DNA from: Rhodosorus marinus CCMP1338
Lineage: Eukaryota; Plantae; Rhodophyta
DNA: 64,000 nucleotides
Direction: 5' to 3'
NCBI GenBank assembly: GCA_029953675.1
Contig: JAMWBK010000002.1
Span: 3,286,001-3,350,000, forward strand
The position numbers and the translations under genes were made by a program. The notes under the pieces were generated by a model that was not told the DNA's origin, did no database searches, and saw nothing but the letters and a program-made list of their open reading frames with translations. Shown here piece by piece: positions 14,804 through 22,235 of the stretch. The stretch's first letter is position 1. Each line of letters begins with the position of its first letter.

Positions 14804-15648
14804 ATGATGAACACGGTTCGTGTGCTGCGGGAAGTCAAGCGCTCCTACATCCGTTCTCGTAGAAGGTAGAATGAAGTTCAAGTCTCTGTTCCCGTCGGAT
14901 GAGTACTCCTTTTTGCTAAAGAGAGAAACCGTGTATTTTTCTTTCAGTTTGAGTACTCGTCGAGATCAGGTGTTGATTTGGGTTCTTGGTGGACCCGGAT
15001 CAGGAAAAGGTACGCAATGTAAGCTAGTAAAGAAGGAGTTTGATGCGGAGCATCTGATTCCGGGTGAGATGCTACGTCGGGAGGCCAGTAGGAAGACCGA
15101 GCTAGGATGTAAAATAGAATCCATACTGATGGACGGGCGGATCGTCCCTCCAACTGTCACGGTGCCGTTACTGAAAGAAGCCATAGCGGCGACTGATAAA
15201 AAGATTGTCTTGATAGATGGCTTTCCTCGAGATCTGGAGAACCGGGAGGAGTTTCACCGGTCCTTGCAACGCGACTGTGATCTCTTACTCGTTTATGAAT
15301 GGTAGGCTCAACCACCTGTACCAAATACCAATCGTCGAGGTCTACTGTGTCTGATCTGTGTTTTTTTTCCGGGACTACAGCTCTGAGGCGGAGCTCCTGA
15401 GGAGGCTGAAGAAGCGAGGCGAGACCAGCGGTCGCAGTGATGACAATGAGAACACGATATTAAAGCGTTTCTCCACTTTCCAGCGCAGAACAGTTCCAGT
15501 CATTGATTTGTACAGAAATTCTGGGAAGCTGAAGATTGTCGACGGATCAAAGGGAATCGTGGAAGTCTCTAGACGGACCACAGACGTCATCAGAGCCGTG
15601 GAGAAGCAGCAACTGCCTGAAGAGCTGGGGACAAGCAACGCTGGGTGA
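14804..15648 (+). CDS. UMP-CMP kinase (adenylate kinase family), possible mitochondrial presequence; 3 exons
   Basis: Motifs WVLGGPGSGKGTQC, LIDGFPR and RGETSGRSDDN. Introns at 14866-14947 and about 15302-15380. The N-terminus MMNTVRVLREVKRSYIRSRRSLSTRR is Arg-rich. Confidence 0.9.
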
Positions 15649-15915: not shown

Positions 15916-17696
15916 CTACAACAGCTCGCTTGCCAAATCCGCGAGCTCGCTTCTCTCTCCTTTCTCCAATAATACATGGCCGTATATGGACTGCCCCTTC
16001 ATCCTTTCGACAATGTAGCTTAGCCCGTTCGATCTCGAATCCACATACGGATTGTCTATTTGGTAGATATCGCCCGTCAGAACGATCTTGGTTCCTTCGC
16101 CTGCTCGGGTGATTATCGTTTTCACCTGAAATTCAAAACCCTCAGCCTTCAGATTCCTCGCCGAAAAAAGTGAAACAAGTGAAACAAGTAACGCCAAAAC
16201 CTCTGCCGTCTGAACTCACCTCATGAGGAGTAAGGTTCTGCGCCTCATCGACGATAAAATAGGCGTCATGAAATGACCTTCCTCGAATGTACGCTAATGG
16301 TGCAACCTCAAGGAAATGGGATTCGATCATGTAGTCCACATCAGCCACATAGCAATTCTCAACCACTTTTCCGTTCCCTTGCTTGGTCGTGTTCACTGAT
16401 TTGATAACTCCTACGTTATCCCAGAGGGGTTGCATGTACGGGTTCAGCTTCGTGTTGATATCGCCAGGCAAATAACCGGAGTCGCGGTTCGAAAGAGGAA
16501 TTACTGGTCTCGACAGATAGATCTACATGTGAAATTGTCAAAGACACCCACCCTGTGAGCGAGCAGCTTACTTCTGCAGAGGTACAAGTATGACATACCT
16601 TGGCATACGTCTTCCTGCTCTCAAACGCAGCGGCCAGAGCGAGAAGGGTCTTCCCAGTTCCTGCCTTGCCTTGTAGTGTGACCAGACGAATACTAGGGTC
16701 CAAAAGCATATTCATAGCGAACGCCTGCTCGCTATTACGAGGCGATATGTTGAACGCTGTTCTCTTTTCCACCCTCTTGAAGGAGTATTCGGCGTTCCTT
16801 GAGTCGTACTTCCACGTGGCCAGGGCCGAGCGCGAGCAATTCCGGAGAATAAACGATTCATTAGGGACGGGGACTGGTTCAATTGGGCACGTATCCTGCA
16901 GCATATCCAATCCTAGTCTTTCGTCCGTAGCTCCACCGTCGTTGGAGAAAAACACGTTGATTGCTTCCGATGGAACATTTTCGTGGATTCTCTGACCAGT
17001 GTACTGCTCCTCAACGGAGGGCACCTTGTCAGTTACGTAGTCCTGCGCGAGTAGGCCGAACGCCCTAGCTTTCACGCGTAGATTGTTATCCTTGGTGACC
17101 AGAATGACATTTCGCCCCCTGAGCTTCTTCTCCTTCTCCCTTGCAGTCAGGGAGCTGAGGGTGGCGAGTATCCTGTGGTCTGGTGAGTCCTGGAAAAACA
17201 GTTCCTCTATTTCAGCGTCTCTGTTAGACAGTGAGATGTTCACTCTGCCGAGATCATCGGAGAGTTTGATTCCTTCGCCGGCAAGGGCTCCCTCGGAGTC
17301 TTTCGCTGCTATATCGTCCAGAGTTCTGAGGAACTCCCTCGCATTATAATGCAGCTCCTCGTTGCCCTTTTTAAACTTGTCGAGCTCTTCGAGCACAGTT
17401 ATAGGTATACACACATCATTCTCTCCAAAAGTGAACAGGCACTGAAAACTATGTAGAATCACATTCGTATCCAGGACATAAATCTTCCTCAAATGATCAC
17501 TGTCCTTGATGATTTTCTTGACCACTTGAACCTCGGGATGTTCCACATCCACCACGCTACTATACATCTCAACCCCAACCTTATACCCTCCCAGTGTCAT
17601 ACAAATCGGTGACCCCCTAGAACTCCGCCTTAGACAACCACCCTTCCTGGTGGTTATCGCAGTTTTCGAACCACTCAAACTAAATGCAAAACCCAT
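15916..17696 (-). CDS. PIN domain + PhoH ATPase (PhoH2/YlaK type) with a putative plastid transit peptide; 3 exons
   Basis: PIN motifs [30 protein letters not shown] and [12 protein letters not shown]. PhoH motifs [36 protein letters not shown] and TGDIYQID. Introns at 16523-16598 and 16126-16219. Confidence 0.92.
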
Positions 17697-20600
17697 TGTT
17701 ATCTCCTCATCATATACATATCCATAAATTTACCACTCTTTCACTCTCTCTCCCTCTCTCTCATCACTGTCCAGCTCACTCTAACTTCATATACTCTTCT
17801 TTTCTCTTCAAACTTCCGAAACAGTCAAGACTTCAACTGAATGTCTCAAAAGAGACGCGCCTCCTATCACTTTCCGACAGTTGACATTTGACCCCCCCTT
17901 TTTGAATATAAATATTTCAAGAAACTTTTCTCCGCCATCATTTCAGACCTAAAAACTATCATATAATCGAAATTTATATGTGGCCAAAATAAAGGCCAAC
18001 CTTCTGAAGCTCCCAAGTGCCAACAACGCGCCCAATGTTCCTGCACTCGATCCTCATTTCGGGTTGCTTTTTATAACAAGAAGAGAACATTCCTAAAAAA
18101 TATTGTTTTTATTTAATTCTACACAAGATTTCACGTCCTGGACCTGAAAATTTTAAATATTTGTATTATCTTAAATATAGGAAAACTTAAGGGGGAAGTG
18201 TTTTCGATTTAGAAAAAATAAAGATATTTTTGACAAGAAGTAAAATAGTTTTTGTTTTTCTTTTGTTCGGAGACCTTGTCCTGAAAAACTGTTTGCGCGC
18301 GCAGGGGGGTGTTCAAAATTCCGATTTCGCAATGCGGGAACCATATTCAAGGGGTAACTAGACAACGACTCATTTGTGATTTATTATTTTAAGTTATTTT
18401 AGAACCAGAGTTGGTAATATACTTCTCGTTCGTAAACGCATGAAAATATCCGTGAGCAAGGAAAAGAGCGGGTTTGACAATTCTTGATAGATTGAGAACT
18501 GGTTTAATTGGATATTTCTGCAAATACCGTTGAACGCAACCGCTCACAACAATTTTTCATGTTTTACACATTAAAAATATTCCATAATTCAACTTATTTG
18601 TTAATATATTCAATATACGATTTCCTTGTTTGTACTTCAATAAACATCGGAATGATAGCTTCCTGACCAGTTATACCGATCGTATCTAACCATATCCAAT
18701 CATAGTTTCTATTCCTGATCCGATTAGTCAATTAACAACCAGATTTCAGATAAAGGTCAAATATTCAAGATTATCTATGAATTGAATAGAAGTAAATATT
18801 TCGATACTCGAGATTCATACCCAATCTACTCTTAGCACGTGGCCCAACAAAGTCAGTCGCTTGCTAACGAGGGGTAAAGAAAGTATTGTTGAAAGAAAAG
18901 GAGATCAGCAAGAGAAACCCGTTAGGTGAGTGTCCCTCAGGTTCAGCTCATAAATATTCCCGGGAAATTTTGGGATGCAGGAGATTCCTGAGGCCGATGC
19001 TGATGCCGATACAGATGTTGGCGGAGTCGATACTTTTGTAATACTGAGGGGCAACTCGGCTGTGTGGTAGTTATCTTTGTGGGCGGACCGTGTTTGTCTT
19101 GTTTGTTTTCTTCGAGTTTTTTGTTTTTGGATTGATCTGAACGTAGCTGTTGTGTCTTCCTTTTGCTGAATGAATGGATGCGGTTTGCGATCGTTGGTTG
19201 GTTTTTGTGTCTGTGGGATCGTCGTTGTCTAAAGGGCATTGATGATATGTCCTTAACACTGACTGGAAAACTAGCTGACTGTACCGTTTCTGTCTACCGC
19301 CGTTAGACCATGCACGCTCGACGCTGTTGTTACCGCTGAACTGGATGTTCCAGGAGTACATCAGGTCGTTCCGAAGGCCGGAGAACAGAAAGCGAGAGAA
19401 CACTGAGCTCTTCAAGTCGTGAGGAAGGCGCGACAGGGGTTCCTGCGCGTGGCTTGTGAAAAGGCGCCAAATCTTAGTTGGCTAGCTGGAGGTTGTGAAA
19501 TCCTCAGAGGCTTTGACTTGCTCTTTGCCGTTTGCCTGTGATGCACGGCAACCTCACCTGGACCCGACTAACACCCGCGTGTTGCGACCTGCCGTTCCAA
19601 TCGTTCATTGAGACCAATCTTGAAACTCAATCAATATATCCAGCTTCCAGTTTCCACAGATGGCAGATTTTTCACACCCACACGTCATTGTCACTGTTTG
19701 CACCCCCCAGTTTACTTGCTCATGTCAGGCATCTGTCACGACGAACGATGTCAAGTGCTCGGTTAACGACGTCGACTGGAATACCCCGTCACCCAACCGC
19801 CTACCCGAGATTTGCTTGTGTTGTAGAACATGCTTCCCGCTTCTTGGCGAAGGCTGATGGGGGTGGTTCCTCATAAGGTCGATACGGGGCGTTGGGAATC
19901 TAGCTTGCCCGGCGAATGCCCAGCGGGTTTCCTACATCCATCGGGAGAGAAATCACAGATTCTGCTGAGCAACGGATCGATCACCAGGTCGTATAGTCAG
20001 CAGAAACTATCCATCCACATTCGGAGTAGAAGAGCTGGCTAGTTTGTGGATGCGTGAGACTGTGCGAGAATTATGTATGGCGGGTGGCGTTGGTATTCGA
20101 GCGTGTTCCTCAGTGCAGAAAATGTAATCGCAAACCTTGCTGTCAACATACTAGTGTGGCTGAGTACCTCCGATGTTCGTCGGTTCTGCTTGCTCCCGTT
20201 GAACCACTTTTTTCAAGGGCAAAATAAAACTGGGGCCGAGAGCAGTTTGACCGCAAACAAAATGAAGCAAAATAAAGTGTTTGCGGGTCGAGAGGGGCCC
20301 TGCGAGCGATGATGACCCTTCCTAATGCGCCCTACTCGTTCCGACTGCCATGGTCATCGTCTCTCGCGGGGTCTCTCTACCGTAACCGCGTTCGCTTCAT
20401 CCATGAAGGTAGTCATCTTAAGCGCAAAGCCAGCGTCGCTGTGATTGCGTCGCATACCAGGTCGTCTTCGTATCTTGCTTCGGCATGTATCAGCCGTGGG
20501 GTAGTTGGTGACATATACGGCCATCTTTTATCTGTTAGTCTTGCTTATACTACCTCGGCCATGCACTTGGAGATCTCCAATGCGGACGGGCTCCGGTTCT

Positions 20601-21294
20601 GGTTCCGGTTCCGGTGCTCTCTCACCGGGTTCGCTGGGCTATTGAGTAGGGCCGGTTCTTCACCGCGTGGATATCTGGTCCCGTCTCTTCGGATTCCCGT
20701 CTGCACCGTATCTTCCGGAATAGTAAATGCCACTCTGATCGTGTCTTCCACCGTCGTGGGCCGTGGATGCGACGTACACATGTAGATACGGTTCCAGTCC
20801 ACCGACGAACGTGGCAAATGCATATGTAGTGTGACATGCATTTTGCGTCGTGCATTTACGATTTCGGAAAGCGCAAGTTCAAAGGATGAAACAAACGCGA
20901 CAGTTTTATCCTTCTCTCTGCCTCATGCCAGAATGCGCAATGGCACCTCTGGAGTCCCAACCCACGAGCAGTTCTGGATGTGTAATTTGGTCACCAGTAT
21001 CCCTATCATGTCGAGCCGTACGATCATAACACGAGGTGACTAGTTGTGTCCGTGGCAACCAAGGGCATAGGATTGGAAGACGATTTAGTGACCCTGCATT
21101 CGATGTACAAGGAGGAAGACGACTGGCTTAGGACGCTTTTGTGAATTCCTGACCCACTCGTTCGGGCTTTGCACCCGCGCCAGGTTCGTCCTGTTAAAAC
21201 CACGCTAGACAGGTCTGGGATCTCCCATGTAATGTACATTTCGACTACTTCGACTAGTTTGACTACTTCAGTCTCTGAACGAAGACTGTACATC

Positions 21295-21337
21295 ATTTCA
21301 GATTGACGTTTGTTAATGACAAACGTCAATCTGAAAT
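21295..21337. repeat. Perfect 19-bp inverted repeat with a 5-nt loop
   Basis: ATTTCAGATTGACGTTTGT (21295-21313), loop TAATG, then ACAAACGTCAATCTGAAAT (21319-21337). Confidence 0.95.
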
Positions 21338-21521
21338 ACTGGAACATTAGTAGCTTTGGCTCTCTCCCAAAATCCTTGTTTTCGGACCCAAAAGTGGCAA
21401 TGCCGTGTGAAAACCGATATTTGGAGTGTGGTGCAGGTTAGGGTGTGGACAGGGTCAGGAGCAAGGAGCTGGCCTTGACATTTGGGAATGATTTGTTAGA
21501 GGTAGTGTTGATAAAAGAACT

Positions 21522-22028
21522 ATGGCGTCTTCTCATCCACTGCAGAATTTTTATTCTCAGTTGGAGCATTTGCAGTCAAAATACGTGGGTACAGGACATC
21601 CTGACACGACGAAGTAGTAAGTTCCTCTCCCTCGTTGTTTGTGTTGTCCTGCGCCGTAGAGGGCCTTGTTTTTGCTTCCTTCTTTGATTTCTGGTGCTCA
21701 TCGACGATGTGGTTGTTTCGCTTTCTTTTCCAAGTGAGTGGGTTACGAACCAACAACGCGATTCTATTAGCTCGTACGTGGTAAGTGATTAGGACGTGAC
21801 CTACGGCACGATGAGCTTTCCTGCTCCCACTATGCTCTTTCCTTTGCTACATTTGAACATTGACGGTTGTTCTCGTGTTTTGAATGGTAAACCAAGGGTC
21901 ATCCTCATATGGTAGAGTATTTTGCGATTGCTGAAGGCCAATCGGTTAGCCGTGTAAGAATGAATCTGCTGGACAAGATGTACCGTCCGTGTGGTGAGCC
22001 ACCAAAGGTTGCAGAGGATGAAGAATGA
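21522..22028 (+). CDS. SF3B5: Splicing factor 3B subunit 5 (SF3b10); 3 exons; not in the ORF track
   Basis: Spliced product is MASSHPLQNFYSQLEHLQSKYVGTGHPDTTKYEWVTNQQRDSISSYVGHPHMVEYFAIAEGQSVSRVRMNLLDKMYRPCGEPP. Introns at 21617-21734 and 21781-21896. Confidence 0.95.
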
Positions 22029-22235
22029 CTTCTAGGAAGCTATAGAAATAATCGTCAACTTTTTTTTTTTAACGGATCTTTAATGAAGAGTTGAAATATG
22101 CAACATTGACATCTTTGAAGATATGAGAGCTGCCCGTCTGGTCTCGTTGTCAGCTTTCCATTTGTACAGATTGATTCTGCTGCCGCAGTATTAAATATCC
22201 TGAGCCGGAGCTTCTCCGTAACCACGACCAAAGCA

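Follow-up and report, generated by a model that had tools for sequence, protein, structure and literature searches.

A nuclear gene of the red alga Rhodosorus marinus for a PIN-PhoH fusion protein of apparent bacterial origin and putative plastid location, with orthologues in red algae and glaucophytes

PIN-PhoH fusion proteins of the PhoH2/YlaK type are very widespread. In the literature searched, they were treated as bacterial, archaeal and phage proteins (PMC5499597, PMC7390352, PMC12038028), and no paper on PhoH in algae or plastids was found there. The sole member with biochemistry is mycobacterial PhoH2 of the PhoAT-PhoH2 module, where, as in the protein described here, a PIN RNase is fused to a PhoH helicase; it is an ATP-dependent RNA helicase on 5'-3' overhang duplexes and a sequence-specific RNase (PMC7390352). 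Bacillus YlaK has the same architecture. Related folds occur singly in two further groups. The PhoH/YbeZ-type stand-alone ATPases (3b85; E. coli PhoH, NF007827) share the P-loop fold but lack a PIN domain, whereas SMG6, SMG5 and Swt1 share the PIN_4 family and the four-acid active site (PMC5499597) but lack PhoH, are cytosolic or nuclear and are of eukaryotic descent.

In the window, i.e. the whole stretch of 64,000 nucleotides that was analysed, translation of the minus strand between 17696 and 15916 revealed a PIN_4 + PhoH protein of 536 amino acids. The gene, NDN08_008333 on the Rhodosorus marinus scaffold JAMWBK010000002.1, is entered in GenBank as 'hypothetical protein' with a start at Met33. 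Its coding sequence comprises three exons and two GT-AG introns of 76 and 94 nt, both in phase 0, with a spliced length of 1611 nt and a single terminal stop:

16599..17696, minus strand: exon 1, codons 1-366, with the presequence, the whole of PIN_4, the linker/beta region and the first part of PhoH, in which Walker A lies
16523..16598, minus strand: intron 1, 76 nt, GTATGT...TGTAG, phase 0
16220..16522, minus strand: exon 2, 101 codons (367-467), with the PhoH core including Walker B
16126..16219, minus strand: intron 2, 94 nt, GTGAGT...TTTCAG, phase 0
15916..16125, minus strand: exon 3, 69 codons (468-536) plus TAG, with the C-terminal PhoH part and the [15 protein letters not shown] motifs

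The annotated protein KAJ8908242.1 (P0121) was identical to the spliced window protein from Met33 onward, and the transcript ORFs P0001 and P0125, both of which have intron 1 spliced out, encode 536 amino acids each, which is the length of the spliced window protein. The junction of exons 1 and 2, where ...ESRKTYAK is joined to IYLSRP, was identical in P0121 and P0001. Intron 2 is retained in the transcript isoform P0123, which reads into ...LTPHEVSPDAK..., and is spliced in P0122 and P0125. A relative, L086, is interrupted at both intron positions, and the gene call P0003 stops at the position of intron 1. The complete PIN + PhoH fusion with two spliceosomal introns, as proposed in the initial annotation, was thus borne out by exon reading, Pfam and the transcript ORFs of Rhodosorus strains, and the motifs ELDKFKKGN and [16 protein letters not shown] quoted there were found in the window translation.

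Domain searches and alignments of 40 and of 10 sequences located the catalytic features as follows:

17037..17480, minus strand: PIN_4 ribonuclease domain, residues 73-220 (Pfam, E=1.2e-33)
16647..16670, minus strand: Walker A/P-loop GKAGTGKT of the PhoH ATPase, residues 343-350
16258-16235, minus strand: Walker B FIVDEAQN, in exon 2

The four-acid active-site positions of PIN_4 are D76, E104, D173 and D203; in both alignments D76, E103/E104, D173 and D203 were invariant, and the acidic motifs ([24 protein letters not shown]) can be read in the window translation. Invariance was likewise found for G343, G346, G348, K349 and T350 of Walker A and for D458 and E459 of Walker B. In Pfam, the pieces from the three exons cover positions 2-43, 53-134 and 136-188 of the PhoH profile as one contiguous domain, with the exon 1 match at residues 317-360 and the exon 2 match at E=1.9e-19; exon 3 matches positions 358-423 of the 427 in the NCBIfam PhoH2 profile. 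The AlphaFold model was confident over residues 70-536, and its best PDB match was 3b85, the PhoH2 ATPase domain, with a TM-score of 0.76 on target. At the level of sequence, with the PIN acids and Walker A and B intact, membership of NDN08_008333 in the PIN-PhoH (PhoH2/YlaK) fusion proteins is confirmed, and helicase-nuclease activity of the product is predicted from the conserved motifs.

The expected bacterial-type architecture was recovered end to end, the protein matching positions 2-423 of the 427 in NCBIfam NF053827. The label 'PhoH2-type' accordingly holds for the architecture but not in the sense of a mycobacterial PhoH2 equivalog, as evident from a score of 267 bits (P0121, P0001) against the cut-off of 680 for NF053827; the planctomycetal protein P0015 scored similarly (260 bits). 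Actinobacterial-type PhoH2 proteins (Tsukamurella and Nocardia homologues) are only ~32-34% identical to the algal protein. Mycobacterial PhoH2 is accompanied by PhoAT, whereas the algal gene has no PhoAT beside it, is eukaryotic and has a product that appears organelle-directed. Bacillus YlaK lies in a distant tree clade, the B. velezensis protein being ~38% identical, and against the PhoH/YbeZ-type ATPases the algal score was 103-106 bits with a cut-off of 380. SMG6, SMG5 and Swt1 were rejected as a source. The closest architecture was that of PhoH proteins from Planctomycetota and Marinimicrobia/FCB (P0015, P0299, P0307, L001, L002), which consist of PIN_4, linker and PhoH end to end, share 55-59% identity and all catalytic motifs with the algal proteins and are their sister groups in the tree. 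The bacterial PIN-PhoH proteins of ~445 amino acids are without N-terminal extension and their genes are intronless; the red-algal proteins further differ from them by a short PhoH insert (..NGKVVEN..) near residues 410-420.

Orthologues of NDN08_008333, with names deriving from automatic annotation, were found in the red algae Porphyridium purpureum (KAA8493072.1, annotated 'protein YlaK'), Timspurckia, Galdieria (G. yellowstonensis KAK4526268.1; Galdieria partita GpartN1_g4519) and Cyanidiococcus (KAF6003618.1, KAK4531278.1), and in the glaucophytes Cyanophora (tig00021352_g20690) and Cyanoptyche (MMETSP1086). They form one clade with the Rhodosorus protein at 47-55% identity. The gene is therefore not confined to Rhodosorus; with orthologues in three red-algal classes plus glaucophytes, the transfer has to be regarded as ancient and its novelty as lower. 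Support was 100/99 each for red algae and glaucophytes, and the branching inside the algal clade matches algal classification; the Archaeplastida node, at 86/93, is not fully supported. The Archaeplastida clade is nested in a group with Planctomycetota and Marinimicrobia supported at 100/99 (99/99 in another tree). Only one of 17 partial or long representatives placed in the tree fell in the algal clade, namely P0164 (317 amino acids, on a 1.3-kb JGI contig); the other 16 fell outside it and were rejected as further eukaryotic lineages. P0143, which appeared as bacterial sister of the red algae in one tree (88/76), was rejected as a case of long-branch attraction; its branch length is 1.88, it is placed elsewhere by FastTree and the genes around it form a compact, bacterial neighbourhood.

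A search with an Archaeplastida-only profile added only Galdieria partita and one 740-aa cluster. Green-algal, bangiophyte, florideophyte or secondary-alga orthologues were not found by it; since the same search missed Timspurckia and Porphyridium, which are members of its own query, absence elsewhere is weak evidence.

Apart from one gap, the trees show descent from a bacterial gene that would have been acquired on one occasion, ahead of the split between red algae and glaucophytes, from a donor whose version probably resembled the present-day genes of Planctomycetota and Marinimicrobia. The two spliceosomal introns and the presequence were gained after transfer. An origin from the cyanobacterial plastid ancestor (EGT), with the likeness to Planctomycetota and Marinimicrobia resulting from later loss or replacement in cyanobacteria, is considered unlikely. 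It would suit a plastid-directed product and a gene that goes back as far as red algae and glaucophytes together, PIN-PhoH does exist in Synechococcus WH8102, WH8109 and CC9605 (PMC5490813), and the trees contained no cyanobacterial or chlamydial PIN-PhoH sequence. This origin is opposed by the nesting of the algal clade in the 100/99 group and by the searches: when a red-algal protein, a glaucophyte protein and a clade profile were each run against 5.8 billion proteins, where about a quarter of the matches were named, no protein named as cyanobacterial occurred among the best 120 matches of any of the three queries, the named ones belonging to Planctomycetota, Marinimicrobia, FCB and KSB1. 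Cyanobacteria were also absent from the best 80 of 591 GTDB loci, and tblastn against PLSDB plasmids matched Firmicutes, Actinomycetota, Proteobacteria and Bacteroidota but no cyanobacteria. The earlier guess of a non-cyanobacterial affinity, made from motifs, agrees with the searches and with the trees, as far as trees without cyanobacterial sequences can speak to it.

A feature that sets the algal proteins apart from the bacterial ones is the N-terminal extension, which in Rhodosorus is organised as follows:

17601..17696, minus strand: putative plastid transit peptide core, residues 1-32 (MGFAFSLSG...SPIC), left out of the GenBank model
17499..17600, minus strand: rest of the eukaryote-specific N-terminal extension, residues 33-66, acidic and predicted to be disordered
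17699..17725, minus strand: short uORF (ATG GAT ATG TAT ATG ATG AGG AGA TAA), out of frame, ending 2 nt before the main ATG

The N-terminal peptide quoted in the initial annotation corresponds exactly to residues 1-33, and its description as a presequence with an early Phe and no acidic residues proved correct: Phe is present at positions 3 and 5, and the first 30 residues contain six K+R, no D+E and nine S+T. Residues 1-66 of P0001 had a pLDDT below 50 in AlphaFold2, and processing probably takes place within residues 33-66, which would then also contain the N-terminus of the mature protein. Bacterial homologues begin ~10 residues ahead of the first PIN strand and have no such extension, whereas every orthologue carries one that is Phe-led and between 60 and 260 amino acids long (~60 in Rhodosorus and 115-260 elsewhere); several of the non-Rhodosorus proteins additionally contain large low-complexity inserts. 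A Phe within the first ten residues was found in Porphyridium, Timspurckia, Galdieria, Cyanidiococcus (F6 in model P0131; F8 and F10 in P0284), Cyanophora, Cyanoptyche and P0297, the sole exception being model P0298 with Phe at 12 and 15. N-terminal Phe occurs in 85% of known rhodophyte and in all known glaucophyte transit peptides, and in both groups it is the Phe motif that distinguishes targeting to the plastid from targeting to the mitochondrion (PMC4510345, PMC7038456). The composition of the presequence fits this Phe-based red-algal plastid signal, and from it we infer a plastid location of the NDN08_008333 product. 'PhoH' was not found in the supplements of the Cyanophora muroplast N-terminome.

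That the same enzyme is mitochondrial, or dual-targeted, and acts on mitochondrial RNA has a rather small probability in our judgement. A basic, acid-free presequence also suits mitochondrial signals, the N-termini of Galdieria and of Cyanidiococcus P0131 are very rich in Arg and Lys, and Stylonematophyceae have unusual minicircular mitochondrial genomes (PMC10250338); yet Phe at positions 2-10 recurs in independent, unalignable red-algal and glaucophyte N-termini, where it has been described as a plastid discriminator (PMC7038456), and the structure prediction shows no amphipathic helix within residues 1-66.

Whether the presequence is translated depends on the start codon. If the GenBank model were right, with a start at Met33 or later and the upstream open frame as 5' UTR, the product would be a cytosolic or nuclear RNA helicase-nuclease; we regard this as improbable. 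The annotated CDS of KAJ8908242.1 does begin there, the sequence MTLGGYK following Met33 is conserved in the Rhodosorus group (P0001, P0128, L086), so that a second start is possible, and the uORF lies immediately ahead of Met1. However, the 32 upstream codons are open, and the M-[GA]-F start, which with its open frame is preserved in P0001, P0125, P0128 and L086, as well as the composition are kept in at least five sequences differing by up to ~40%. The context is also better at Met1 (acaATGg, with A at -3 and G at +4) than at Met33 (tgtATGa), and an in-frame TAA is located upstream of Met1 at 17732-17730. A protein beginning at Met33 would still be ~35 residues longer than the bacterial ones, and the extensions of the more distant orthologues are far longer and Phe-led. 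The uORF is relevant only if the 5' UTR in CCMP1338 includes it; P0127, derived from a transcript of another strain, runs through the homologous region.

As the initial annotation had stated, there is no antitoxin ORF beside the gene, the upstream 4.5 kb containing no convincing ORF; the adjoining small upstream gene by which a PhoAT-PhoH2 module is recognised was thus not found at NDN08_008333. The 80 nearest bacterial loci (best 80 of 591) also revealed no conserved small upstream ORF as a partner, and the framing of the algal protein as a toxin that lost its antitoxin is not needed. We give little credence to a conflict or stress module, in which the enzyme would bring about broad RNA decay under stress or infection and be kept under control by an inhibitor encoded at another locus. 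Its precedents are a Synechococcus PIN-PhoH mutant with a higher yield of Syn9 phage (PMC5490813) and the binding of mycobacterial PhoH2 to the PhoAT protein (PMC7390352), but, besides the missing partner at the algal and bacterial loci, PADLOC gave weak matches at the P-loop level only, and a housekeeping function better suits retention for more than 1 billion years in two algal phyla.

The gene has eukaryotic neighbours (Mito_carr, RRM, Ank/RCC1, ADK) on a 3.48-Mb scaffold, which bears out its assignment to the nucleus; scans of the window for tRNA, Rfam families and tandem repeats found nothing. Bacterial contamination or an assembly artefact, to which the top non-algal matches (bacterial, 50-59% identity) might point, is barely conceivable and was rejected in view of the two GT-AG introns, the eukaryotic neighbours, the presence of the gene in independent transcriptomes of several strains, the synteny (ADK, AAA) preserved in a second species and a GC content equal to that of the surroundings.

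We conclude that NDN08_008333 probably encodes an ancient, plastid-targeted, ATP-driven RNA helicase-nuclease of bacterial origin that stands alone, this being the best explanation of the data. Translation would begin at Met1 (17696) and not at the annotated Met33, and the Phe-bearing, hydroxyl-rich, basic and acid-free presequence would give the protein entry to the Phe-dependent Omp85/Toc75 import route of red-algal plastids before being cleaved off. Inside the stroma, the P-loop domain of PhoH, which probably assembles into a hexameric ring, would use ATP to bind structured RNA and unwind it in 5'->3' direction, and would pass the strand to the PIN domain, where the four-acid metal site would cut. 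The outcome for plastid RNA may be processing, surveillance or turnover, and the enzyme would act by itself rather than as a toxin paired with an antitoxin.

More tentatively, and with somewhat more doubt than confidence, it can be proposed that the gene was recruited to the young plastid via ancestral Phe-dependent import and kept for more than 1 billion years as a core enzyme of plastid RNA processing or surveillance, the green lineage having lost or replaced it. If this is true, the gene would mark an early contribution to plastid RNA metabolism from outside the cyanobacteria, and the plastid, with its very small transcriptome, would be the first setting in which the RNAs physiologically targeted by a PhoH2-type enzyme can be found; plastid RNA amounts to only ~200 genes' worth, which should make the search for what the enzyme cuts more tractable.

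In GenBank, the transit peptide appears to be missing from the model of NDN08_008333, and the same may be true of other Rhodosorus models. Since the orthologues are common to red algae and glaucophytes and would stem from one ancient donor, the gene is real, old and unstudied and no one-off. With this conserved, apparently organelle-directed clade, the PhoH2/YlaK family extends to eukaryotes, and the two 'Phe-import' lineages would have gained for their plastid RNA-metabolism toolkit a component that is not cyanobacterial.

The gene NDN08_008333 reads as three exons, and its spliced CDS is 1611 nt long, coding for 536 aa and having a stop only at its end.

Exons and introns of the PIN-PhoH gene
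17696..16599, minus: exon 1, 366 codons
between exons 1 and 2, minus: intron 1, 76 nt, GTATGT...TAG, between codons
16522..16220, minus: exon 2, 101 codons
16126-16219, minus: intron 2, 94 nt, GTGAGT...CAG, between codons
16125..15916, minus: exon 3, 69 codons plus TAG

In domain searches run on each exon separately, PIN_4 was found complete in exon 1 (residues 73-220, E=1.2e-33) and the PhoH profile was distributed over exon 1 (first 43 positions), exon 2 (53-134) and exon 3 (136-188); together, the three pieces covered positions 2-423 of 427 of the NCBIfam PhoH2 model. Exon reading and the Pfam and NCBIfam profiles bear out the PIN + PhoH fusion split by two introns proposed in the initial annotation, whose quoted N-terminal peptide is exactly residues 1-33 of the spliced protein. 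Gene model and family assignment (PIN-PhoH) are virtually certain.

The GenBank product KAJ8908242.1 ('hypothetical protein', 504 aa) is identical to the spliced protein from Met33 on and is encoded on JAMWBK010000002.1, a 3.48-Mb scaffold of GCA_029953675.1, next to mitochondrial-carrier, RF-1-domain, adenylate/UMP-CMP kinase, haloacid-dehalogenase-type hydrolase, AAA ATPase, RRM and Ank/RCC1 genes; GC content is even throughout the window. In L086, a locus of a related species (Logan run SRR22824290), the PIN-PhoH gene is followed by ADK and AAA genes and is broken at both intron positions of the window gene. The exon-1 search retrieved a 536-aa MMETSP transcript ORF (P0001; 94% identity) whose cluster includes Rhodosorus marinus entries, and the Rhodosorus transcripts P0122 and P0125 are spliced at intron 2. 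Scaffold context, L086 conservation and spliced transcripts therefore establish the gene as nuclear and spliced, as had been proposed, and as expressed, and, with the uniform GC, exclude contamination. Since the MMETSP isoform P0123 keeps intron 2, ending in an intron-encoded tail, intron retention occurs for this gene. The intron-containing adenylate/UMP-CMP kinase gene (14820-15648, plus) converges on the PIN-PhoH 3' end, with ~270 bp between the stop codons; in the related species the order is kept, with the kinase at L086 3933-4358 and the AAA ATPase genes next.

In bacterial homologues, ~10 residues precede the first PIN strand. The algal proteins carry an extra 60 (Rhodosorus) to about 260 residues, which are unalignable across algal classes and have an early Phe in common.

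N-termini of algal PIN-PhoH proteins
Window: MGFAF
Other Rhodosorus: MGFVF and MAFVF
Relatives: MGFVGG and MGFVPVGF
Porphyridium: MAFCC
Timspurckia: MIGTAFLY
Galdieria: MFAKK
Cyanidiococcus model P0284: MVHVSAAFIF
Cyanophora: MAGFIL
Cyanoptyche: MSMTLLGF
P0297: MFVVC

P0298 departs from this pattern: its Phe residues are at positions 12 and 15. At a Phe frequency of ~4%, by a rough estimate some 30% of proteins would carry one Phe between positions 2 and 10; chance is an unlikely cause of its recurrence in about nine lineages. An early Phe is present in 85% of the rhodophyte and all of the glaucophyte transit peptides known so far; it separates plastid from mitochondrial presequences in both lineages and is functionally required for cyanelle import (PMC4510345, PMC7038456). 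Among residues 1-30 of the window protein, 9 are Ser/Thr, 6 are Lys/Arg and none is acidic. Judged from these sequence features, the protein is probably targeted to the plastid.

The GenBank CDS starts at Met33, and the 32-codon Phe-led presequence (17601-17696, minus) is absent from that model; transcript ORFs of other Rhodosorus strains include it. From the Phe-led extension, the context of Met1 (A at -3 and G at +4; T and A at Met33) and an in-frame TAA 12 codons 5' of Met1, we infer with good confidence that translation starts at Met1 (17696); the GenBank model most likely cuts off the transit peptide. The same truncation may affect further gene models in the assembly. An upstream ORF of 8 codons with four ATGs (17699-17725, minus; MDMYMMRR and a stop) ends 2 nt before the main ATG and, if transcribed, could influence whether Met1 or Met33 is used.

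The enzyme part is 55-57% identical to bacterial homologues over its whole length. The PIN acids D76, E103/E104, D173 and D203, Walker A (G343-T350), Walker B (D458-E459) and further PhoH motifs are invariant in the alignments, and all these positions were found in the window's own translation. AlphaFold2 of P0001 modelled the PIN and PhoH folds with confidence across residues 70-536, with pLDDT <50 for residues 1-66; the sole solved relative is the Corynebacterium PhoH2 ATPase domain 3b85. The available family biochemistry concerns mycobacterial proteins: PhoH2 unwinds RNA duplexes with a 5'-3' overhang in an ATP-dependent manner and is a sequence-preferring RNase, and in a proposed model the PhoH hexamer feeds RNA to the PIN ring (PMC7390352). 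By homology, the algal protein may well be an ATP-driven RNA helicase-nuclease acting on organellar RNA. The red-algal proteins have in common a short PhoH-domain insert at residues ~410-425 (about 16350-16395, minus; variants ..NGKVVEN.., ..QNKLVPN.., ..QGKLVEN.. and ..NGKVVPT..), which is absent from bacteria; in glaucophytes this site holds a longer insert rich in Lys and Ser.

When 1.84 billion cluster representatives were searched exhaustively with HMMER, the top-scoring matches after Rhodosorus were five long eukaryote-like proteins, with P0132, from a member of the Planctomycetaceae, and the partial P0003 interspersed among them. HMMER and cluster membership identified orthologues in Galdieria yellowstonensis (KAK4526268.1), Cyanidiococcus yangmingshanensis (KAF6003618.1 / KAK4531278.1), Porphyridium purpureum (KAA8493072.1, 'protein YlaK') and the glaucophytes Cyanoptyche gloeocystis and Cyanophora paradoxa; Timspurckia oligopyrenoides came from an earlier search and Galdieria partita from a clade-profile search. 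In the latter, algal proteins scored 793-890 bits versus 747 for the best bacterium, and none from the green lineage, bangiophytes, florideophytes or secondary algae was found; as two of its own query members were also missed, this absence is weak evidence. An environmental 317-aa partial PhoH (P0164; L088, JGI 3300049738, 1.3-kb contig) falls inside the algal clade and may represent a further algal lineage carrying the gene.

The phylogeny called for by the initial annotation was computed with FastTree (232 sequences) and IQ-TREE (LG+C20+F+G4 PMSF; 73 and 63 sequences), and all three trees agree. Red algae and glaucophytes each form a clade (both 100/99) and together one clade (86/93, in 88% of bootstrap trees), within which Cyanidiophyceae are the earliest branch and Porphyridiophyceae are sister to Stylonematophyceae. 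The algae share a 100/99 clade with one large group of Planctomycetota and one Marinimicrobia/FCB group, with no firm branching order among the three. Bacillus YlaK (38% identical) and the actinobacterial PhoH2 type (32-34%) are distant. The long-branch bacterial protein P0143 grouped weakly with red algae in the 73-sequence tree; because FastTree placed it elsewhere and it belongs to a compact bacterial operon, this grouping was treated as an artefact. In L009, a MAG labelled Chitinophagaceae, PIN-PhoH is near-identical to that of a Pirellulales MAG (L010) and nests within Planctomycetota; the label is probably a binning error, not a transfer.

A single ancient bacterial origin common to red algae and glaucophytes is thus well supported, and the simplest history would be one bacterium-to-eukaryote transfer before the two split. 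A few strains of Synechococcus have PIN-PhoH (PMC5490813), as do Chlamydiota throughout (PMC12038028). Since the trees contain no cyanobacterial (or chlamydial) PIN-PhoH, the case against a cyanobacterial origin rests on the named best matches; no protein named as cyanobacterial was among those listed in the searches, and a non-cyanobacterial donor appears likely.

No small partner gene lies beside the PIN-PhoH gene in the window. The ~4.5 kb upstream (17697-22235) contain no convincing ORF (none >160 aa) and no NCBI-called gene, tRNA, Rfam match or tandem repeat, which upholds the earlier claim that no antitoxin ORF adjoins the gene; this gap is unusually long compared with gene spacing elsewhere in the window. 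The 80 closest bacterial loci likewise have no conserved same-strand small ORF upstream, and Chlamydiota and Synechococcus PIN-PhoH also occur without phoAT (PMC12038028). Against the NCBIfam mycobacterial PhoH2 equivalog, the protein scored 267 bits, far below the cut-off of 680. By architecture it is a member of the PIN-PhoH family and is not to be filed as a PhoAT-PhoH2 toxin.

The novelty proposed for the Rhodosorus gene holds in part: no paper was found linking PhoH or PIN-PhoH to plastids, red algae or glaucophytes, the fusion being described as a bacterial, archaeal and phage protein (PMC5499597, PMC7390352, PMC12038028), but orthologues such as the Porphyridium protein are already public, under automatic names, and the family is known. 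Rather than a new mechanism, the algal protein would be a eukaryotic, organelle-directed member of the PIN-PhoH family, which in these algae is real and ancient and apparently of non-cyanobacterial origin.
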